A stretch of DNA of 56,726 nucleotides, filler included, from Platydemus manokwari (taxonomy: Eukaryota), in the NCBI GenBank assembly GCA_037951405.1. It is 5 parts of 5 records of this genome, joined end to end, with 100 filler letters (N's around TTAATTAATTAA, not from the genome) between each part and the next. Parts side by side here need not be neighbours in the genome. Positions count along the whole stretch, not along the records: positions 33,511 to 47,366 come from JBBMOY011594742.1; 4 more parts are not named here. The stretch is one strand, 5' to 3'. Below are positions 33,511 through 47,366 of the stretch, one piece after another. How positions within the stretch are numbered: position 1 is the first letter of the stretch; each line of letters begins with the position of its first letter. The position numbers and the translations under genes are program-made. The notes under the pieces were generated by a model, which saw only the letters and a program-made list of their open reading frames with translations, was not told the origin of the DNA and searched no databases.

Positions 33511-33530
33511 ATTATTACTATTATTATTAC

Positions 33531-33570
<40 letters not shown>
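33511..33570. repeat. (ATT)n microsatellite at a contig edge
   Basis: About 20 ATT/ACT units, directly visible. Confidence 0.92.
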
Positions 33571-33571
<1 letters not shown>

Positions 33572-33857
33572 GCATAAATTATCAAATTTTAGGCATCAAT
33601 TACTACCTAAAAATAATTATTTAATCTTGTCATCATGTATTTCCAATAATTTAAAAATTTTCAATTACAAGTCTATATTTAATCGAAAATATAAATTAAA
33701 ATATTTATTAAACTCAAATTCTGGACAATTAATTTTTAATAACAAAATTATTGCATATAATTTTTGAACTTGTTATTTCGAGTTTTAAATAAAACCTTTT
33801 TTTTACGATCTCAATGAATATTTAAGAAATCAAGAACATATTTGATATAATAGATTA

Positions 33858-34463
33858 ATGACAAATACTCATCATTATGATGAAAACGTCAATTATTTCT
33901 TTGGTATTTGACACGGTATATAAATTTATCTTTCTTGACGGAATGATTATTTATAATAGTTTTGCAAATTGACACCATTTTTCTACAAAGTTATATCAAA
34001 TTTGTCTAGAAAGTGTCGTTAATCAACTAGTCGTCTATTTATTCTTACTAATTAATTCCTTTGTTATCATTATGATTTATTATATTTATACATTCTATGA
34101 AAGTTAGAAAAATATTTATCTTAGTTTATGAATGCGATCTATTAAGATTTGCTTGTTAAAGTAGTCGGATTTCGAAAATACATTATTTTAATTAACTAGC
34201 ATAATTAAATTCTTTAATATCACAACAATATTTAATATTGATTAAATATACTTGATTGTTAGAATATTTAAAATTGCCTAACTTAGATTTGAAACGTTTT
34301 TTCGTTTCTCAATTGTTTTAATCTTAATTGTTTTTATTTTAATCAATAATGATTATTTTTACTGTAAACAAATTTTCACTCAAATCATCTCACTCAATTC
34401 GTAATAATTATCTTACTATCTCTTAATAATAAACAAATTATGTTCGCAGAAACATGTTATCGC
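33858..34463 (+). CDS. Putative upstream exons (33854/33858-33903, 34010-34102, microexon 34450-34463) encoding a short N-terminus and a transmembrane helix of the death-domain-like protein
   Basis: All three are flanked by AG/GT with compatible phases (1, 1, 0). They give MTNTHHYDENVNYFF-E-SVVNQLVVYLFLLINSFVIIMIYYIYTFYE-K-TCYR, in frame with exon 34879. Hydrophobic runs arise easily in AT-rich DNA, so this is tentative. Confidence 0.38.
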
Positions 34464-34878
34464 GTATTTTAAATTATTACTTATAATAAACAAACTTGCC
34501 GGATTTCAATTAAATATTTCGCTGTTAAAATGTATTATTTTAAATTCATTGATTGACATTTAACTGTGATCTCCTGCATATCTGATTTTATATTGTAAAT
34601 AACAGAGTTTTTATATTTTAATAATTTACTTGCTCGATACATTATAATAATAGGCTAATAAATAATTCCAATAATCTTCTTAAAGTAATTACTTATTTTT
34701 GGCAACAATTATTGCTAAAAACAATTTTGGAAAATGTTCCTAAGCATGAATTTCTTTAGTAGAATTTTAAAATTTGTTTTAAACATATTTCTGAAGCGGT
34801 TTTGTTATATTTTTATTTATTTATTTATTTATTTCAAATATAGTTAACAAACAATACTAATAATTGAATATATATTAG

Positions 34879-35290
34879 ATTGTGAAAAACACAAAAAATG
34901 AGCTGTACTTACCAATTATTGATTTCGAATTGTTGGAAGAAAGTAAACTGAAAGAATTCGTTAAATCTACAAGTGGAAATGAAATCCAAAATGTGATTTC
35001 ATATCAAAACAACTCCAAAAATTGCATTCACGTTAGAAAGATAATGGCATACTCCAAATCGCATTTTCGAATTATTGCTTCGAACTTAAAAGACTATTTC
35101 AAACTTCCCGATCGTTTATTTTATGTTTATCTGTCTTCTTATGATAAAATGATAAATCAAAAACATATGGATGTACTTGCTCTACTTCAGCACAAGTATG
35201 CTGACAACGTATTGCAAATACTCATTGATTATTTAATTAATATGGAAATGGTTCACCCATTGGTTATTTGTAAAATTAAAAAACATTTCT
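34879..35290 (+). CDS. Internal coding exon with a C-terminal death-domain-like helical bundle
   Basis: A 412-nt open exon in very AT-rich DNA, bounded by TATTAG| and |GTAAGT. HFRIIASNL..FKLPDRLF...INQKHMDVLALLQHKYADNVLQILIDYLINME follows the death-domain pattern WxxLAxxL..Lxx.I....EQxxxMLxxWxxxxxxxxxxxLxxAL. Confidence 0.6.
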
Positions 35291-35408
35291 GTAAGTATGC
35301 AAAATTCGAATTTCATTTCGTATAAGATCAATAAAATAAATTAGTTTCTTCGTTAAATTTTACGAATAATATATTTTGTATGCATTATATATTTTATTTA
35401 TTAATCAT

Positions 35409-36000
35409 TGTTGCTTTATATGATCGTTCATTTAAATCTTTTTTATTGTATTCACTGTTTGGTAGGTCACAAATCAACGAAAATGTTTACAGGAACCAAT
35501 GAAATAAACCCAAAAAGGGTCCACACACGTGAGCAGTCAGCCAATCAGATTAGTTCTAATTTTAATCCATATTTAGAAGTTAAGAATCGACAGGCACATA
35601 CATACAGATGCGGCAAGCCTAAATGTTTACCAATGGCACGAGAAATGCGAGGAAAATTTCAAGTAGACTTATCCTAGAATAGATTCAGCAAATGGAAAAC
35701 GAAGATCGGCGACATCAAGCGGACACACCTGATAGCTCTATAAAAGAGGCTGAGTTCCATGAATAAATGTCAGTATTTTTGGTCGGTAACTCGCGTGTTA
35801 AACTTATCTTTATGTGATTTACAGTAATCAGTCTTTTTAATTACTTTCTATTTTGTTTTCGACTTTCGTGTGCTGATCCTGTCTTGCGTGATTAACCTTT
35901 GTGAATTGTAAAGAGGTTTACTAGCAGTTGTTGAGATTGCAATTGTAATGTTTTTGGGTAATATAGTTTTCAGGTCCAATTGTTTATTAATAATCCAACA
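35409..36000 (+). mobile_element. Solo LTR (592 bp)
   Basis: Termini TGTTG...CAACA, flanks TCAT/TCAG (4-bp TSD with one mismatch), and internal CCAAT and TATAAAAG. It aligns by eye along most of its length with 38966-39496. Confidence 0.75.
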
Positions 36001-36780
36001 TCAGCTGGCATAGTCATCGTGAAACAATCTATTTTTAATCTAATAAAATATTCAAAAATCATTACAGAAAGATTAGATAATTTGTTAATAATTGGGATAT
36101 ATTTTGTATTTGTTGAAATTAATAATCTCATAATAAAATTTCCGTCAAAATTTTAACGATATTTTAAATTAGATAAATAAATATTGGATTATTAGCTCAA
36201 AGAATAATTTATGAAATATTAACAATGGTGTAGTGGGGACTTATTATCCATTATAGGACAACTTTTATTAATTATGTTTTTGTCGTGATTTAATAAACCA
36301 TATTGATGGTATTTCTGGCTCTTGATTATGTTTAAAAAATTCAATTTCTTATTGCAATTTTCGATTGGCAGTATGGGCTTGTTTTATTAATTTTTTATTC
36401 ATCAGTAAACAATTCAAACTAAGGTAACTTGAGGAGATCAAATAATCTGAATATAATCTTATTTGCAATTATTTTAATCTAAAAGTTAATTCCGTATGTC
36501 GCTTTAATTGAAACAAATAACGTCATAATTATCATCGATATGACCGATTAACATTAAATTAAAGATTCTGCATCGATTTTATCATATATATAAAATTGCT
36601 AATATTCCATTCAAGTTGTTGTTGATATAAATATTTTTAGAATCATACTAGGTTTCACACAAAGCATTTTTAAGGCTTTAATAAAATTTCCGAAACATCA
36701 CAATTTTACTGATTAATAATTTATTGATTCATCAAATATTTCAATATCCACCCCCATAATCATTATGAAAATCAGATATA

Positions 36781-37319
36781 CCGTGCGATTTTTAAGTATC
36801 CGTATCTAAAACCTAAATAAGACAACAGTAAGAACAAACTAAATGTATTGAATTACTTTAAAGCAAAACAAAACACAATTACAGTAAGAACAAATAAGCA
36901 ATTAGTGCCATCATTTTCTTTTACAATATTTGCCACCTTTTCCTTCATGATTTCATCAGACGGTCTTCCTGATTGCAACCTAGTGAATAAGTTTTCATTT
37001 TCTTTAAACTTCTGTTTCCAGTATTGCACTGTTGTCCGTGCTGGTGGTGCATGATTGAAATGTTGTTGAAATTCTTGACAAGCTTTGGCACTACTCTGGT
37101 ACACTATTGCATGGCTAACTATAAACACTCTATCTGCAAGCTAAAATTTCACATCACCAGCTGCTTTCTCCATATTGTAATAATGCAACTGATTAATAAT
37201 AAATAAAGTACATCAGCGATTATTTAATATCGATTAGTATAAATTTGTGAGTATAAATTACCATATTGTGTTTGTTGTTTTATTTTAGTTTTAGAGACGG
37301 AGACTTATGAATCGCACGG
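36781..37319 (-). mobile_element. Internally deleted non-autonomous Tc1/mariner element with about 50-bp TIRs and an N-terminal HTH (DUF4817-like) fragment
   Basis: The left end CCGTGCGATTTTTAAGTATCCGTATCTAAAACC matches the reverse complement of the right end CCGTGCGATTCATAAGTCTCCGTCTCTAAAACT, with TA on both flanks. The internal frame reads RVFIV...ACQEFQQHFNHAPPARTTVQYWKQKFKENENL...SGRPS. Confidence 0.88.
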
Positions 37320-38965
37320 TATATAAAAATAAACTAGTAATTCAACTTTCAGTTGAAATCACTTTTTAAGACCATATTATTTTACAGTTTTATCTGTAAA
37401 TAATATGTAATAGAAGCTGGTCTTGTATTATTCAATCATGGATTTGACACTAATTATTAATCACAACTTAAACTATATAATCAATTATTAATTGGCTCTC
37501 ATGTGTAAGTTTTGTTTATTTTACTATATTTATGATTAGCTTCTATTTATTTTGATTTAATTTTTTTCTTCATATTATTAACTTTAAAATAATCTGACTT
37601 GTTGGAATGAGTCATTGAATTGATAGGAAACTGTATGTTAGTATTTCGTTGGGTTGAGTAACCAATGAGTTGACTTTATGACTAATTTTTATGAGCTATT
37701 TAATGAAACCTCAACGAAGGAATCTGTACACTTTATCAGAGATTGATTGATTGTCGTAAGTAGTTATTAAATTATGTTTAAATATATAAATTAAAATAAA
37801 AATATATAAATAAACCACGTTTAAGTTAACATATAAGTCTTTTATCAAAATGAAATATTAATCGACTAAAATTTATCATTAAATTCAAATTTAAATTTAA
37901 AATTACATATTCAGTTAAATTGATAAAAGTTATTATGAAAGCGCTGACTTAGTTTAAAAATCCGTATATATTCATAAATAAACTTAAACAAATTAAAATA
38001 GGACCACAGAACCAAATGCTGACTATGATTAGAGGAACTGGTTTAACAAAGAACAATCCTGCTTCTTGAAGATGTTGATTATGCCTAATTAAAAGACAAC
38101 GGTTTATAGTGATGTTCTGCACACATACGCGCATATATATACATATATTAATAAGCTACTAAAAAATATTATGTTATGTTTGTGTGCAATCAAATATGAT
38201 TATTGTGTTCATGAGTTCTCTATTTAATCGTCTATGTTGTATAACTAATTAATTAATTCACTTTCAGTCTCAAAATTGTTGATCAATCGATAATTTGTTT
38301 GATGTATGTTTATCAGTGTATTTTTGCATAGAGTTTAATTTATTTTATCGTGATTAATTTATTTTCTGCTTTTATTTTTTTAATAATATTTTTTTATTTA
38401 TTAATTTGGAGTTGTTTTCATTATTTCGATTTGATTTTCTGAAAACCATAATATTTTCTAGTTTAAACATGTTCATGATTTTCTGACAACTCTATTTTTT
38501 TACATTCGAGTTTAAACAATATAATAAGCTGCTATATTATTTTATCATGATTTTGTTATTATTAAAATATTGGTATATAATTGTACTATTTTTCTACATG
38601 TGCTTAATATTAATTTATTATTACTAATATTCATGTATCTGCTATTTCCCTGTTTGGGTTTGTCTCATTTAATGATGCCGAAACTATCTCAAATTTACTG
38701 AAATCTAAATTAAAGGCAAGGAGAACCATAGATAATATTATGATATTAAGTTTAAAGTAGCTGGCTACAATAGGCAAATACCCAATCGATAGAATTGTAT
38801 TTTTTAGTGAATAACGACTAATTAATTTACAAAACTATTAAGCGTAATAATTAAATCAACAAATCTAAAAAGGTACCCTAACCCAAATACAAAGAACTCA
38901 ATTAATTGTCTTCACTCTAAATAGCTTCCTTTTGTAATAACAAATTGATTAAATGAACGAGAATT

Positions 38966-39496
38966 TGTTGCTATGGTGTAAGTGCGATGGTGTTTTCTTG
39001 ATGTTAGGTATATCAAAAATGGTCAGTACACACAAACCCGATAAACACACTTGCCTTTAACCAATCAGATTAGTTTTGAAGTAAATCCATATTTAGAAGC
39101 TAAGCATCGACAGGCACATACCTACAAACAGTAGCAAGCTCAAATATTCGCCAATGACACAAGAGATATAAGGAAAATCTCAAGTAAATCGACTCACAAA
39201 CAGATTCAGCGAATTAAGAACGAATATCCGTGACATAAAGCAGACACATCCGATGGGTCTGCAAAAGAGTTTGAGTTCCATGGATTTCTGCCAGTCTTTT
39301 TTGGTCGGTAACTACAGTGCTTAGATTATGTGAGATTTTAGTAATCAATTTTTTTGTTAACTTTTCATTCTGTTTTTGATTTTCGGGCGCTGATCCCATC
39401 TTGAATGATTTTCTTTGGGTTGGATTTTGTTGTTATTATTGAGACTTTGAATTAATACAGATTTTCAGATTTAAATTATCGTTTGATAACGCAACA
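38966..39496 (+). mobile_element. LTR (531 bp), probably the 5' LTR of the decayed element downstream
   Basis: Termini TGTTGC...GCAACA, homologous to 35409-36000, with no matching TSD. It is followed by TTGACAACC (possibly a decayed PBS) and gag-like sequence. Confidence 0.72.
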
Positions 39497-39699
39497 TTGA
39501 CAACCTAATTTAAATGTCCTGTGTAAATTTTTTCTTGTACGAAACTTTTTTAAGATGAATTTTTGTTGTATTTTTTGTGCTGAAATACGGTGCTATTATA
39601 GCGACTTTCGAAATACTATCCACCAGGATATTTTTTATTAAAATTCTTTTCGGTTTTAATATTCGTTATTTTAACCTGATCTAATAGGTTTCGATTGTA

Positions 39700-40900
39700 T
39701 GTATGAAAACACTACTAAGGGAAATTACTAGACTGAATGGTTAACGATTTGTTTTAAGTTACTTTGAATTATTTCGTTGACAACTGAAGAATCGAAGGTT
39801 GCAAACTGTATTTTCGTTAACATCAACGGACTACGGGTGCAATAATAGGATATGCACTGGATGTATATAAAAATCTGATACGAAAGAATAGCATACCACC
39901 TTTGCTATATGATGGAGTAAAAGAAGATATACAACGTAAAATGGTATTGGAAGAGGAATTGCGGGCTACGTTTGCCAAATCATTTCGAAATCAGTAAGTA
40001 TTAACGTTATACAAATTGGCTGTCAAAGCCTCCCAAATAATGAGGGCGCTTCCTGGATACCAAAAATACCGCTAGTACCAAAAGACTTTGTAATGCAAAT
40101 GACGAGAAATCAATTTATCACTGGTACGCGCGGGTATATTATAAATGCGTTATAAACTGTAGATGCAACCGGTCTAGAGACATTGAAACCCGTTACGAAA
40201 AAAGAGGATATGAAATCGGTCATTTAAAATTCGCTGATGAATTGAACGCTATTTTGATAAATAAAACAATTGATGCTAGCGTTGAAGATCAAAAAGAATC
40301 TGATAACAACATGAAATCGCATGATTTTAAAAAATTATTAGAGCCATTTCAGAAGGGAAAAAAGCAGAAAATACATCAGGATGTGAAGGTTTAAGAAATG
40401 ATAATAATAGGAGTTGAAAACGAGTAGACAATCCTAATTGGAATAATAATGGCAAATGGAATTCTAGAAACAAATTCATATGGTACGTAGAGATAATTCC
40501 CCGATAAGAGGATAGAGAAGTGACTGAAATCGCAATGATAATGATAAAACATATCAAAATAGCCAGAAATGATGGAATAATGATAGAAGCAATTTGATTA
40601 AAAGTGGATATAAGGACAACTGGCCAAATTGGAGAAAAAAGTTTCATCAAGAGTTGAAATATCAAAGAAATCGAGCAAATAACCCAGGATTCACAAACGA
40701 TAAAATTAATCGCGATAAATATACCCAATGTTATTTCCGTAACAAAAATGGACACAGCGAGGACATGACCAAAGTGGTATAAAGGCGAGCAGGTAGAATG
40801 AAAGTGAAATAAAACAAAATGAGATCAAACGTTTAGAGTCAGTGTAGAGAAATGAAGATTTCAAAACATTGAGAATGGAATTTAACGATGTAAGAATTTT
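39700..40900 (+). pseudogene. Degraded retrotransposon gag-like region with a zinc-knuckle remnant
   Basis: IGYALDVYKNL...YDGVKEDIQRK resembles the gag pattern LxGxAxxxYxxL..YxxLKxxL. An N/R-rich linker and TQCYFRNKNGHSEDM (decayed CX2CX4HX4C) follow. The region lies just after the LTR. Confidence 0.5.
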
Positions 40901-41699
40901 AAAATGAGAGAGAAAAGTAGTGTACATTATTATATGAAAAATCAGTCAACAAAGATAGACGAAAATGATAGTGTTTTGGTTTTTGATTGTTTGATTTTCA
41001 GAAGGATTTGGCTCGTTGAATTAATATTAATCTACACTTTATTTTGCGTCTGACTTTATGTCACTGTTAATTAATATAATGGCTAAAACATATATAGTAT
41101 AAAGATTAGAAAAATTAATAATGATAATAAATAATAGGTTATTTTAGAATAACGAATTGTAAGTAATTTCAATTTTCCGAGTTTTGGAATTTATTGATTG
41201 ATTAGTGACGGCTTTATATGCTCGCTAACAACTGAATTTAGTTGAAGAACTAATTGTTATGAGTACCTTATGGACATATTATCAATAATTACAGTCGTAT
41301 TTTTGTAGAGTAACTGTGGTTTTTCATCTTGAAACAAATAATAATTAACTGTTGATTATAATAACAGTGAGCTTTTTTAAAGCGATTGTTGTGGACGTAA
41401 TTTTGAGTCATCACTCCTTCTTTTATACTGTTTTTTCTCCATTTTTGATTTTTCATCATTTTTTTAATAATTTTTATATTTTATATAATCTATTTTTAGA
41501 TTCCCACACATCTTTAGTTCTATTTGAGTAACCTACCATTATTTCATCTATTTTTGGAATTATTAAATTATATTTTATATATTTTCTATTTTTAGCACTG
41601 TTTAGATGTCTATATTTTTTTAGAAAATTATATACTTTTATTATTATTATTTATTTCATGGTATTTCGGTACTCAACAATAGTGATCAAGCTAAAACTC

Positions 41700-44080
41700 A
41701 GACATTTGAACGAACTGAATAGAACTATAGAGGAGGATAAAGGATCTTTGCAAAAGTCATAAATTCAGAAGGCAGAATAATAAAAAATATATGACCTAAT
41801 GAGCATTATACGAAATGGCCGTAAAAAATACAGCAAAGGAAATGCTAAAAATGAAATTATTTGTTATAAGATTTGAACGTGATACAATTAAGAAAGTAAA
41901 ACCGAAACACAACCTTAAAAATTTAACAGCGGCGGAGATCAGTGAGGTTTTCACAAGAATAAACGAAGACAAACATAAAGAAGCAAGTCAAAGAAAAAAG
42001 GGAAGTAAAATGTTAACCATCATTGATTTCACTATAAAGCTCGTGTTAGATTCATTAAAACACGACTTAACAGAAAAGGCGATACGGGAAATATTCGAAC
42101 ATACCGCTACTATAAAAGATAATTTATATTTTTAATAAAAAAAGTGATTAAATGAACCCACAAATTCAATGCCTGTGATACAGGAAAGAAATTTTGAACA
42201 TGAGTTCACAAAGTTTAAAAAAGAGCTTGGTATAATCTGCACCAAATATTATATAAAATAAGAAGGAAGAGAAATATATCATCATGATAATATACTATGG
42301 GTTGTTACAGTCAAAGGATAATATTGTTGAGAACCAGTTGTTACCAGATAAACCTCACAATCTACCAATGGTGGAAGGCTTTTTCCTTACTATAAAATTG
42401 CAAGTAGTAACAATAGTTGATAAAACCGGGGAAGAACAACAAAGGTACATAATCCAACCGGTATTTTCAAAAACTAATTGGTTTGTAAAAATGATTAGAT
42501 GCAGAATAGCATTTCGAGAAATTATATGATGGATAAATCAAAATCATCCATGAAGGAAAGAGAATAGAAAGCGATCAGAAATTAATCAATAATTTCTCTA
42601 CGATGTGGACCAACAGAATACAAGTCTCGCACAAAATATGCAAAGGAATATCAGATTCACATGTTGACAAATATGCGGCCTGTAGACTTGTATAATGATA
42701 ACTACATTACAGCTTTATAAAACGGCAATGTAATAACCTATAGTTTACCGACTTATTAGAGTCAAAAGTTAATGGACGATCATGAAAAAAATAAATTGTG
42801 GCAACTGAAAGAGTTGATCAAGAAATTCAAACAACAAAACCCATCAAATGCGATCAATGGACAACGACTAAAAAGCCACGAGGACGGCCACCAAAAGCAC
42901 TAAATTGAGACAGAGAAACTGAAACCTCGAGTGATAAAGTTATAAAAGTGATTGAGAATAGTCAAAAGATGAATATGGAAATTAGTGACGAGTAACATTT
43001 GATAATCACGGACCTATTAAACACCAATATGCTGTAGTTTGATTTGCTACCAACACACAGCATTGCAATACAGATACGATTCATAACAAAGGACAAAGAG
43101 ATGATTCATAATATAGTAAACTTAGATGAAGCTATGATCAGAGAATCATATGATTGTGCCAGTAGATTAAAAAATATGTTGGTGCATATGGTTAAAACTG
43201 AAAACAGGGACCCATGGAAAACATATGTGAGAGGATAATAGCTTTATTAACACTGATAAAATACTCATTACTATCGCAAAAGATCATGATAGGATGAAAT
43301 AATGTGTTAGATGGACAGTTTTAGCAACAGTATTTTTTTTACATGTTAGACATGGACAGATAAAGAGTCTAAAGTGCTCCAGATCTCTTCAGATGTCATA
43401 TTCTGACGTACAATGGAATTTAGAAAGAATGGATGATCAACAGACCAGTTGGATGGTAGAGAAGGAGTTAGAATCTTGAGATGACTTACCATATCTTCTA
43501 TTGATGGAATCGATAGTGAGGTCACAGGTTCTAAAATTTTCCTGAATGATGATTTATAGTGAAGTTTCCACAGTGAATAATCAGAACGTGTCACTTGCAA
43601 AAAATGAATCAAAAGGCAAGAGAGGTAGAGATTTTCACAGAAACGATCAGAGTAAATGGATTAGGTAGCATGTCTTCCACAAGTCAAGATTAAGCAAATA
43701 TCGGGCTCATCATGGTTAAGCAGCAGATTAGCCTAAAATAAGATCGGATAAGTAAAAAGAGGACCTGATGTAGGAGGCAGATAAAACTCTTGGTATTATA
43801 CTGTATTTGAGATGATATGATTTATGTCACTACGAAGTAAGGGGAACAACGGAAGAATAAACTATAAGACTTTTATTACAAAAATTTAGGGAATATTCTA
43901 TCAGAAAGAGGTCACTTTATCATCGTTGGCCTGATGAGGTTATAAAGATAGAATTATCTGAAGGTAATGACAAAAGAAGGAACAAGAAGATAGTGGAAGA
44001 GTTCATCTAACTTATGTCACTGGTGAGATTGGCAAGAAAGAGTAAATTTGGTGTTAGGTCAATTGTGACTGATAGCCTTT
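41700..44080 (+). pseudogene. Decayed coding-like region, probably retroelement-derived, with an RRM-like segment
   Basis: A chain of plus-strand ORF fragments (41815, 42284, 43044) with purine-rich coding-like composition. IKLVLDSLKHDLTEKAIREIFEHTATIKD resembles the RRM beta1-alpha1 pattern. Confidence 0.3.
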
Positions 44081-44126
44081 AGTGTAAAACATATTTAATA
44101 AGTATTATTTTTAATTTCATTATTAT

Positions 44127-44227
44127 AAGTCCGTTGTTAAACGAACTGTCAAAAATTATCAACAAATGTTGAAATGCGGTCGTACCATATAAACTTTTTC
44201 AAGAATTCGATAAGACCGTCTAACGGC
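44127..44227 (-). ncRNA. SL RNA: Spliced-leader (SL) RNA gene, triclad planarian type, about 101 nt
   Basis: The 42-nt leader GCCGTTAGACGGTCTTATCGAATTCTTGAAAAAGTTTATATG (44227-44186) ends in the flatworm-typical AUG, directly followed by a GT donor. Stem I (CGGTC/GACCG) encloses the donor. Stem II is TCAAC-ATTT-GTTGA, the Sm site is AATTTTTGA (44157-44149), and stem III is AGTTCGTT-TAAC-AACGGACT. The first 22 nt match the Schmidtea mediterranea SL1 as I recall it. Confidence 0.93.
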
Positions 44228-45609
44228 AAGTAAACTTTTATTTCGTTTTGCGTTCACATATTTTCTGTTATATTCAAGAATTTGTATTCTTGCATAACCA
44301 TATCAAACCCGTCATACCTGTATTAGTTTTCTTCAATTTCAAGATTTCAAACACAGTTTTATTAACAAATTTATGGATAAAGTTTGATTATCATATATTT
44401 ACCAAATGTTTAATCGATCAAAAATGCAAAATTCTTGTCACTCCATTATTATTTATAACGCTGACAAAAATTAGATTTAATCTAAAAATAATCTTAAAAT
44501 ACACAAAATATAAAAAATCGCAACCAATCAATGAGCGATAATTTTTTCTAACGTTCAAAACTTTTGAATGTGTATTTATTTATTATTGATTATTTAGTTA
44601 TTAACAAACACACATTATTTATTTCTTAATAAAAACAGCTATTAACTGCTTGACATAAAATTGAGATTAAATGTTTTCATATTATATCGATCGATACAAT
44701 TTGGAGAATGTCCTCAATGGCATCTACTTGTTGTCATTGGTGAACACAAGATAATACTTGAGAAAATTTTTTTACTTAATTAAGCTAATTATTGATTAAT
44801 TAATTATACAACATACTGGATATGTTTTATTAAGTTTTATATAATTATAATTTTTTTATATTTTAATTATTTTGTGAATTATTGAATTAAATGAATTTAT
44901 ATATAATTATGTATAATTATATTTATTATCATTAATGACTAATAAAACAGTTATAAAATTAAAATAATAATTCTTATTTGAACTCATGTTTATTGAAGCA
45001 TTTTTTAATTTTTTAACTTTTTAATATTAATTTAACAATATCTTTGATTATCTATTTCTATAAGACCATTTTTAAAAAGATTTTAAGCCGAATTTTATTC
45101 ACATTTTCTTATTAATTATTTACAATTAACCTTTACAAAATTGAAAGAAATCAATTAGTTCCATTACAAAATACAATTCAAGGTGACATGTAATTCCGCG
45201 AAGATGAAAAATTAGTACACGTCTCTTTATCCTTTCGCTAGAAATTGCAATAAAATAAAGTCATATTACACATCTACTGATTGGTCATCAAAGAGACATT
45301 AACTAGTCTACCCACTAACTGATATGGTTGACTCTTCAATATATCTTCAAAATACATCTCCGCCTTTTTATTTAAATTTAGCTACCTGCCAAAAATATAA
45401 GGATATTTTTGAAATATTTATAAAAATTAATAATCTATTTAAATAATATACTAGAACAGATTTATCAGTATTTAATTTTACTATTAAACTTAATTAATTC
45501 TCTGGATTTAAAGTTAATTAAAATAAATTAAATTAGTATTGAGAAGTTGGTATAGATCAAATATAAATTTATTAAATATAATATAAATTTCGCTCAATTC
45601 AGTGTCGGT

Positions 45610-45900
45610 ATCAGGAAATACTGACTTTGACCGTGAAAAAGTCAGAATTTATATGCATATGAGCTCAAAAATGAGGTCGTCAAGTTTTTGAAGAGCGTAA
45701 AAATCAAAAAGCATCTAAAGAGACTAATTGACCAAAAATGTTCTATAATAATTGAAAGTTTTATGAGAACAAAGATTATTATTTTACAACATTTGGCACA
45801 AGCAAATACTGTTACTGAATGTGATACTATTTATGGAATTCAATTTGGTAATTCTAATAGATTTAAACCATCAAGATATTCCGATGATTGTAACCGTTAA
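45610..45900 (+). pseudogene. Possible hAT (Buster-like) transposase fragment
   Basis: LYAYELKNEVVKFLKS...HLKRLIDQK resembles LxRFYELRNEVxxFL...L.D; only this one motif supports the call. Confidence 0.3.
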
Positions 45901-47210
45901 TAAATTATAAATCGTTATAAACTGATACTTAATGTTTCCATCAAGGGTCTAACACCTAACATATAATTACTTTTATTGATTGTAATAGTAATTAACTAAT
46001 GTGTAATTTTTAAAGAAGCAGTTTTGTGACCTCAAGAGTAAAAAATCGACAAAGGGTACGATGTTACTCCCTACATCGAAATGAAAACTAAAGAAGTATA
46101 TGATTTTAAGCTCCAGTAAATTTTAATCAGAATTTGTGGAGGGCGTGATAAATATTTTTCAATAAATTTAGTGTCGGAGATGGATGAAGAAAAACTGTGG
46201 GGAACAAATCCAGGCTATTTCCGAGCCAGTTAAACAGTTAAATAAATATAAATGGTGTCTTTTTATTGCTAATTTTAACAACTCTTAAAACGCTATGTCT
46301 AAATTTAACAACATCCTACTGGTTTTAGATACTTAATTTACTAAATTAACCTACGCTATTTTTAGTAATGATAAAGTTACTAATAATAGATTTATATTTC
46401 ATATATTTATATAAAATTATTTATATATCTGCGACGTACAGATAAGTCAAAGATTATACTGAAATATTCTCACATAGAACTAATTTAAACCCTTCTGATA
46501 TATAAATTAATCAATATCTTTTTACAAATTGTACATTTATAATACAAACTTAAGTCTAATCTATATATTACTATCAATATCTTTGACAAAGGTAACGATG
46601 CTAATAATAATAGGAAGCTAGATAATGGATTCGCCGATTGAAGAGCAATAGAGAAAAATAAAACGGTCTGAATTTTAAAAATCTGAATTTGGATAAATAT
46701 TGTCAAAAAATATTGTATTTTTATTTCCAGATGAAAAATATAGTCTATCATCTTACAGTTACAATGTTTGATTTCTTTTTGGTAAAGATTTGTAAACAAA
46801 TACATTTAATTATCCTATTATTATATTATATGAATTCAATTTTGAATAATATAAACCTCATACGGCTTATATACAAAATTCATAACTGCTACTACTAAAG
46901 GTATTTGAACATTGACTCTTACAAAGGTATTGAAACTATGTTGAGTACACTGATGGTATCATACACGTATAATTAATCTGTGAAAATCTGCTATTGGCAA
47001 AGTAAATGGATCAAATCGTTTAGCAAATTTTATAGTTCTTAAGTTTTATATGAAAATAGTGAAAAAATACAAATTGATACTTGTTGAATATGAGACCTAA
47101 AATTTGTTGATATAATCGTTTCTTGGTGTTTGTTGTGACTACCGTATAAAAGCTAACGTTGTAATTAGTTATGGTATAAAACCAAACGGTAAATGGAATC
47201 ATCACGTATT

Positions 47211-47344
47211 TTCAAAATATTATAAATAATTTCTACAAATTTCTATGATGATATTAGAAATAATTTATATTTATTAATTCAAAATATTATAAATAATTTA
47301 TACAAATTTCTATGATGATATTAGAAATAATTTATATTTATTAA
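47211..47344. repeat. 67-bp direct tandem duplication next to a gap
   Basis: 47211-47277 and 47278-47344 differ at one base. Confidence 0.9.
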
Positions 47345-47366
47345 AGACAATTGTGAAGATTTTAAA

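Follow-up and report, generated by a model that had tools for sequence, protein, structure and literature searches.

A probable planarian-type spliced leader RNA gene from a dispersed multi-copy family

Parts of the gene and their predicted fold

The DNA investigated in this study, here called the window, is a stretch of 56,726 nucleotides, which includes a piece of 13.9 kb at 33511-47366. On the minus strand of this piece, reading from position 44227 down to about 44128, lies an element with the parts of a spliced leader (SL) RNA. In the numbering used below, the RNA position equals 44228 minus the window coordinate, RNA position 1 thus corresponding to 44227. In the 5' to 3' direction of the RNA, its parts are:

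44228..44229, minus strand: the dinucleotide TT (in the sense of the RNA) that directly precedes the transcript start and falls within the identical multi-copy block
44186..44227, minus strand: spliced leader (mini-exon) of 42 nt, RNA 1-42, with its 5' end at the G at 44227
44184..44185, minus strand: GT splice donor directly after the leader ATG (AUG/GUACGA, in the context ...UAUAUG/GUACGA), paired inside stem-loop I in predicted folds
44177..44218, minus strand: stem-loop I, RNA 10-51, a predicted fold which encloses the donor
44159..44172, minus strand: stem-loop II, RNA 56-69, with a 5-bp stem (56-60 with 65-69) and a 4-nt loop, just 5' of the Sm site
44149..44157, minus strand: predicted Sm-type site AAUUUUUGA, RNA 71-79, between stem-loops II and III
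44128..44147, minus strand: stem-loop III, RNA 81-100, with an 8-bp terminal stem (81-88 with 93-100) including one G-U pair, and a UAAC loop
44108..44127, minus strand: 3' tail of about 20 nt, in which other genomic copies are still similar

The leader starts with GCCGTTAGACGG and ends with TTTATATG, its terminal ATG occupying 44188-44186; the frame of this ATG contains no stop codon within the 42-nt leader and reads AVRRSYRILEKVYM in translation. The parts listed in a preceding sequence-only reading of this DNA, namely a 42-nt exon ending in AUG, a donor in stem I, stem II, an Sm site and an 8-bp stem, were all found, on the minus strand. Sm sites follow the general pattern purine-A-U(4-6)-G-purine, to which AAUUUUUGA conforms. 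Flatworm leaders characteristically carry AUG at their 3' end (PMC12582326; PMC3510090), and the element also displays the order of motifs, the donor within a hairpin and the lack of a nearby mobile element by which flatworm SL-RNA loci have been recognised, along with 'hairpins surrounding the Sm motif', a criterion with which the position of AAUUUUUGA agrees (PMC12582326).

In the predicted fold, stem-loop I is formed by the pairing of RNA 10-14 with 47-51 (CGGUC/GACCG) and of 16-20 with 41-45 (UAUCG/UGGUA), placing the donor nucleotides G43 and U44 inside the stem. Its distal portion (RNA 21-40), where pairing is weak, contains, as judged from the fold, the alignment and the second genomic variant described below, all differences found between leaders. 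Unconstrained folding of 44120-44227 yielded a minimum free energy of -23.5 kcal/mol, at a z value of -2.33 relative to 200 dinucleotide shuffles, and a structure where the Sm site pairs with the 5' end. When the Sm site was forced to be single-stranded, the canonical three-stem-loop shape was recovered at -21.7 kcal/mol. Compared to shuffles one by one, stems II and III score far better, at z -6.9 and z -3.9, respectively, whereas the core of stem I (-9.9 kcal/mol, z -1.95) is modest and exceeds shuffles only marginally, all of these values being predictions from one sequence.

Within the window, the 5' 20-mer of the leader, the block of stem II and Sm site, and the leader-donor junction (20-24 nt) occur once each, at a chance expectation for the three pieces of zero for up to three mismatches. 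A resemblance that had arisen by accident in AT-rich DNA would draw on the composition of the region (about 31% GC) and on weak spurious Rfam matches in its vicinity, but it has to account for a 20-mer identical to that of an mRNA leader where no chance matches are expected, for five structural parts in their correct order, and for a unit that is present in multiple copies in the genome's own reads, and we thus regard this explanation as effectively refuted.

A search of Rfam at gathering threshold gave no match in 33511-47366, and at E values of up to 10 no SL family was found in 43900-44450. Since no Rfam family recognises the element, there is no curated model behind it. A match to SCARNA7 at 44024-44120 on the plus strand, beside the 3' end of the SL gene, was rejected as AT-rich noise, as it scored 25.9 bits compared to the required 65 and skipped 236 model positions. 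The sub-threshold matches to snoR27 and psRNA6 were equally taken as AT-rich noise.

Copies of the gene in genomic reads

The locus is contained in a single public run (here termed X1, from 2024), which is available as contigs of DNA-like character and whose kind is not on record. Its restriction to one run suggests a little-sequenced species, and its leader may never have been described. The X1 contigs were aligned to 43900-44500 at 80% likeness, with contig depth as a rough proxy for copy number, a measure for which single-copy contigs agree well among themselves. A contig of 82 nt, identical to 44148-44229 and containing no other letters, shows a depth of 100.1 compared to 15.2 for the 2547-nt contig of the unique 3' flank, which corresponds to about 6-7 copies sharing an identical block from position -2 through leader, donor, stem II and Sm site. 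In the copies with this block, the sequence of stem III and the flanks have diverged. Four other contigs, at depths of 11.5-18, extend from flanks of their own into the 3' portion of the gene, with 6-10 differences each, clustered at 44137-44145, where stem III has its 5' arm and its loop. Their likeness ends at 44107-44111 and is followed by unlike sequence; the tail at 44108-44127 may contain the true 3' end of the RNA or a signal for 3'-end formation. An identical functional block in diverged surroundings is what selection or gene conversion on a working family of small RNA genes would produce, and the contrast between the conserved stretch from leader to Sm site and the variable stem III and flanks offers a clean case of a dispersed small-RNA family in which to study concerted evolution or selection.

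The same data bear on the description of the gene in the sequence-only reading as intact and solitary. That it is intact and not decaying is borne out by its complete and ordered canonical parts and by the identity of the 44148-44229 block in about 6-7 genomic copies. Its solitary nature holds for the 13.9-kb piece, with one copy and no tandem array, but not for the genome, in view of these same 6-7 identical copies.

Besides the 42-nt leader, the genome contigs contain a 43-nt leader, amounting to at least two isoforms, plus many copies of the intron core only. The 43-nt form is found on a second variant contig (depth 34.6) and is distinguished by an extra base between RNA 23 and 24, by A29U and by C52A in the unpaired linker. 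For the bin of stem II, depth sums to about 540, around 35 times the unique depth, indicating many more SL-like copies that share the intron core while their leaders are less than 80% alike. A tentative possibility, which we consider rather unlikely, is that the leader represents an isoform not yet described that serves a separate subset of mRNAs or certain cell types, in the manner reported for SL3 in stem cells of S. mediterranea.

On the 5' side, a 31-letter identity between copies ends at 44229, and one other copy is unrelated right from there, at position -3. The window lacks cover by X1 contigs at 44236-44403, and the upstream comparison stops short of this segment. As nothing is common upstream of -2, the first 22 nt might, as a matter of speculation, double as an internal promoter. 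With no shared promoter seen among the copies, some of them, possibly including the one starting at 44227, may be silent. A copy of this kind would have been kept intact by recent duplication or gene conversion and would lack a working promoter, leaving expression to other copies, which are perhaps clustered. This explanation would be in line with the single copy within 13.9 kb, with the divergence of the copies at -3 and with the organisation in related animals, where SL genes reside 'in several clusters' in S. polychroa (PMC10899757) and in tandem repeats in many flatworms (PMC12582326), and where 6 of 54 SL copies of S. mansoni were judged pseudogenic by their aberrant flanks (PMC2770079). 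However, the transcribed block does not contain any change from the most abundant genomic version and the other copies also have single-copy flanks of their own, dispersal seemingly being the rule in this genome, whereas clusters would be invisible to short-read contigs. Overall, a silent copy, although the foremost alternative, appears unlikely to us, and we prefer to view the element as a genuine SL RNA gene within a dispersed family.

Some X1 contigs depart from the layout of the region. One of them (depth 29.5) joins 44229 to sequence that is 86% like 44421-44500 and thus skips 191 nt, reflecting either another copy without 44230-44420 or one with unlike letters of similar length in this place, which bears on the location of the promoter. 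In a second contig (762 nt, depth 16.4), the joint goes back 74, from 44184 to 44111, which points to a copy that either contains a partial duplication or has its SL intron part rearranged. In the 3' flank, the depth at 43976-44015 amounts to 25-41 compared to 15, and two contigs that are unlike on both sides of this segment identify it as a small dispersed repeat fragment.

The leader on mRNAs and its relation to known SL systems

When JGI metagenome contigs were searched for the first 20 nt of the leader, three loci were recovered. The first (L001) was rejected as a leader-bearing locus, since it is a chance match in GC-rich bacterial sequence. The two others (L002 and L003) originate from one environmental JGI metatranscriptome (Ga0247628) and carry the 20-mer at their extreme 5' end. 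L002 is the mRNA for a SAM50/Omp85-like protein and L003 the mRNA for the beta subunit of the mitochondrial trifunctional enzyme (thiolase), and a leader shared by two mRNAs that bear no relation to each other is the signature of SL trans-splicing. This leader, located at L002:1524-1565 (minus strand) and L003:1-42, each including one extra leading G, is 41 nt long and ends with TTTTTATG. The extra G may be a cap-derived addition and, if read in this way, it would place the 5' end of the family leader at the G matching 44227. In L002, the leader ATG is the in-frame start of the open reading frame, whose protein begins with MMHN, whereas in L003 it is out of frame and opens a short uORF, both consistent with the dual behaviour shown by the AUG of flatworm leaders (PMC3510090).

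Alignment of the window leader with that of L002 and L003 (alignment A1) revealed identity of nt 1-22, with all differences, four substitutions and one indel, falling at positions 23-38. Through the shared first 22 nt, the element is thus connected to a family of leaders for which trans-splicing is real. The confinement of differences to distal stem-loop I, as proposed in the sequence-only reading, is maintained in this comparison, with the leader on the two mRNAs differing in the same region. Both leaders end with TATG but differ in length, with 41 nt compared to 42 nt here, and L002 and L003 belong to another organism, from which the leader alone is known without its SL RNA gene.

Scans of viral contigs, which included the variant-specific half of the leader, gave no matches, and neither did a scan of bacterial and archaeal genome contigs. 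The best-matching homologues of the L003 thiolase are about 70% identical and the contigs that carry them are without SL, thiolase being too conserved in this respect. For the SAM50-like protein of L002, the closest relative in the protein collection is 57% identical, while the remaining ones are at about 30%, and among six contigs from three of these distant relatives none carries the triclad leader.

In planarians, SL1 and SL2 of S. mediterranea, with leaders of 42 nt on small RNAs of about 110 nt, were reportedly described by Zayas, Bold and Newmark in 2005, and SL3 of the same species is said to have been added by Rossi et al. in 2014. The gene described here resembles these SLs in its 42-nt leader ending in AUG, a predicted RNA of about 100-120 nt and several isoforms per genome. 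Compared to the presumed sequence of SL1 that is quoted in the sequence-only reading, the window leader is identical in 36 of 42 positions, among them the first 22 and the last 7 nt, and differs at 23, 27, 28, 30, 34 and 35; the count of 36 in 42 given in that reading is thus arithmetically correct. These sequence comparisons identify the window leader as a variant form of the triclad leader, which is invariant at positions 1-22 and free at 23-38 between species and isoforms, pointing to a constraint on 1-22 and on the terminal UAUG. According to work cited in the part of PMC12582326 concerned with planarians, SL3 is enriched in stem cells of S. mediterranea. The leader of S. polychroa is similar in sequence and fold to SL1 of S. 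mediterranea and is encoded by six genes (PMC10899757), a number which, in a comparison by description only, is close to the about 6-7 identical copies found here, whereas their arrangement in several clusters differs from the one copy per 13.9 kb. Searches of literature full text with fragments of the leader, as DNA and RNA, including the 3' half of the variant and the corresponding half of the presumed SL1, retrieved nothing relevant, and the supplements of PMC12582326 contain no planarian leader.

The SLs of parasitic flatworms (Schistosoma mansoni, Fasciola, Echinococcus) do not show sequence similarity to the gene (PMC12582326; PMC2770079). Their Sm-like motif ends with UVUUUGG, in contrast to UUUUUGA in the window, and their genes are often arranged in tandem, with a unit of 595 nt in S. 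mansoni, which is not the case here. The SL RNA of S. mansoni further differs in containing only two loops and a leader of 36 nt. The copies of its gene, 43 identical, 5 variants and 6 suspected pseudogenes (PMC2770079), present the same picture as in our case. The nematode SL1 and SL2 (RF00198, RF00199) share with the window gene the general character of an Sm-class small RNA that donates a 5' mini-exon, but their leader has a length of 22 nt and no terminal AUG, and no Rfam model scores on the window gene.

We thus interpret the minus strand from 44227 to about 44128 as a genuine SL RNA gene of planarian (triclad) type that belongs to a dispersed multi-copy family, an assignment to which we attribute a probability of about 80%. 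Its transcription, the binding of Sm proteins and the trans-splicing of the exact leader are inferred from its anatomy and from general knowledge of SL trans-splicing. In the proposed mechanism, transcription would start at the G at 44227 and lead to a small capped RNA of about 100-110 nt, on which Sm proteins would assemble as a ring at AAUUUUUGA (44157-44149) between stem-loops II and III. The GU donor, paired with leader positions 10-20, would be presented in stem-loop I and attacked by the branch point of the outron of a pre-mRNA, upon which the 42-nt leader would be transferred to the acceptor site of the mRNA. If located in frame, its terminal AUG could be used as start codon, like that of other flatworm leaders. 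Pairing with the donor region would account for the invariance of positions 10-20, whereas that of positions 1-9 may reflect either cap-proximal recognition or an internal promoter element. An element of the latter kind has reportedly been shown for the nematode SL.

That planarians employ SL trans-splicing and possess more than one leader isoform is established (PMC10899757, and studies cited in the planarian part of PMC12582326). The process has been known in these animals since 2005 and its concept is not changed by the gene in the window. The leader would, however, provide a tag of use for the annotation of true mRNA 5' ends, of operons and of chimeric transcripts caused by SL in this species. 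In S. polychroa, about 12.5% of chimeric transcripts are caused by SL (PMC10899757).

Surroundings of the gene

The 13.9-kb piece is AT-rich throughout, with a GC content of 20-34%, and neither protein-coding genes nor tRNAs or further Rfam RNAs were convincingly identified in it. No tRNA, 5S or snRNA gene adjoins the SL gene which, in the absence of a 5S neighbour, does not form part of a repeat unit of the SL-5S type, and no direct or inverted repeats bracketing it were found.

These surroundings are relevant with respect to a potential origin of the sequence from a mobile element, or as a retro-copy of either an SL RNA or a trans-spliced transcript. Retro-copied transcripts are the main class of false positives for SL loci, and 597 SL-like loci associated with LTR or LINE elements have been discarded elsewhere for this type of association (PMC12582326). 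The piece itself harbours a mariner-like remnant, which is located away from the SL gene at 36776-37324. However, the discarded loci contained partial leaders, whereas here the full leader is followed by donor, intron part, Sm site and terminal stem. Since the leader continues into donor and intron part instead of the body of an mRNA, a retro-copied trans-spliced transcript is excluded. The region around 44108-44229 shows neither a poly(A) tail nor flanking direct repeats, the 3' flank is at single-copy depth, and the nearby open reading frames contain no transposon domain within 500 bp. We thus consider a mobile origin to be very improbable and retain the assignment as an SL RNA gene of a dispersed family.

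The segment at 36776-37324 consists of inverted arms of 52 nt, 87% complementary and 445 nt apart, that surround an open reading frame of 91 amino acids with weak matches to the Mos1/mariner helix-turn-helix domain (HTH_48, DUF4817), and it looks like a short, internally deleted element of mariner type. The segments 35541-35807 and 39061-39329 are connected by direct repeats in two pairs, one of 66 nt (88%) and the other of 32 nt (78%), with a common spacing of 3.5 kb, which may stem from the duplication of a segment or mark both ends of an element that has decayed. At the edges of the piece, we found an (ATT)20 microsatellite at 33511-33570 on one side and, on the other, a 67-bp tandem duplication at 47211-47344, whose two copies are 98-99% identical.
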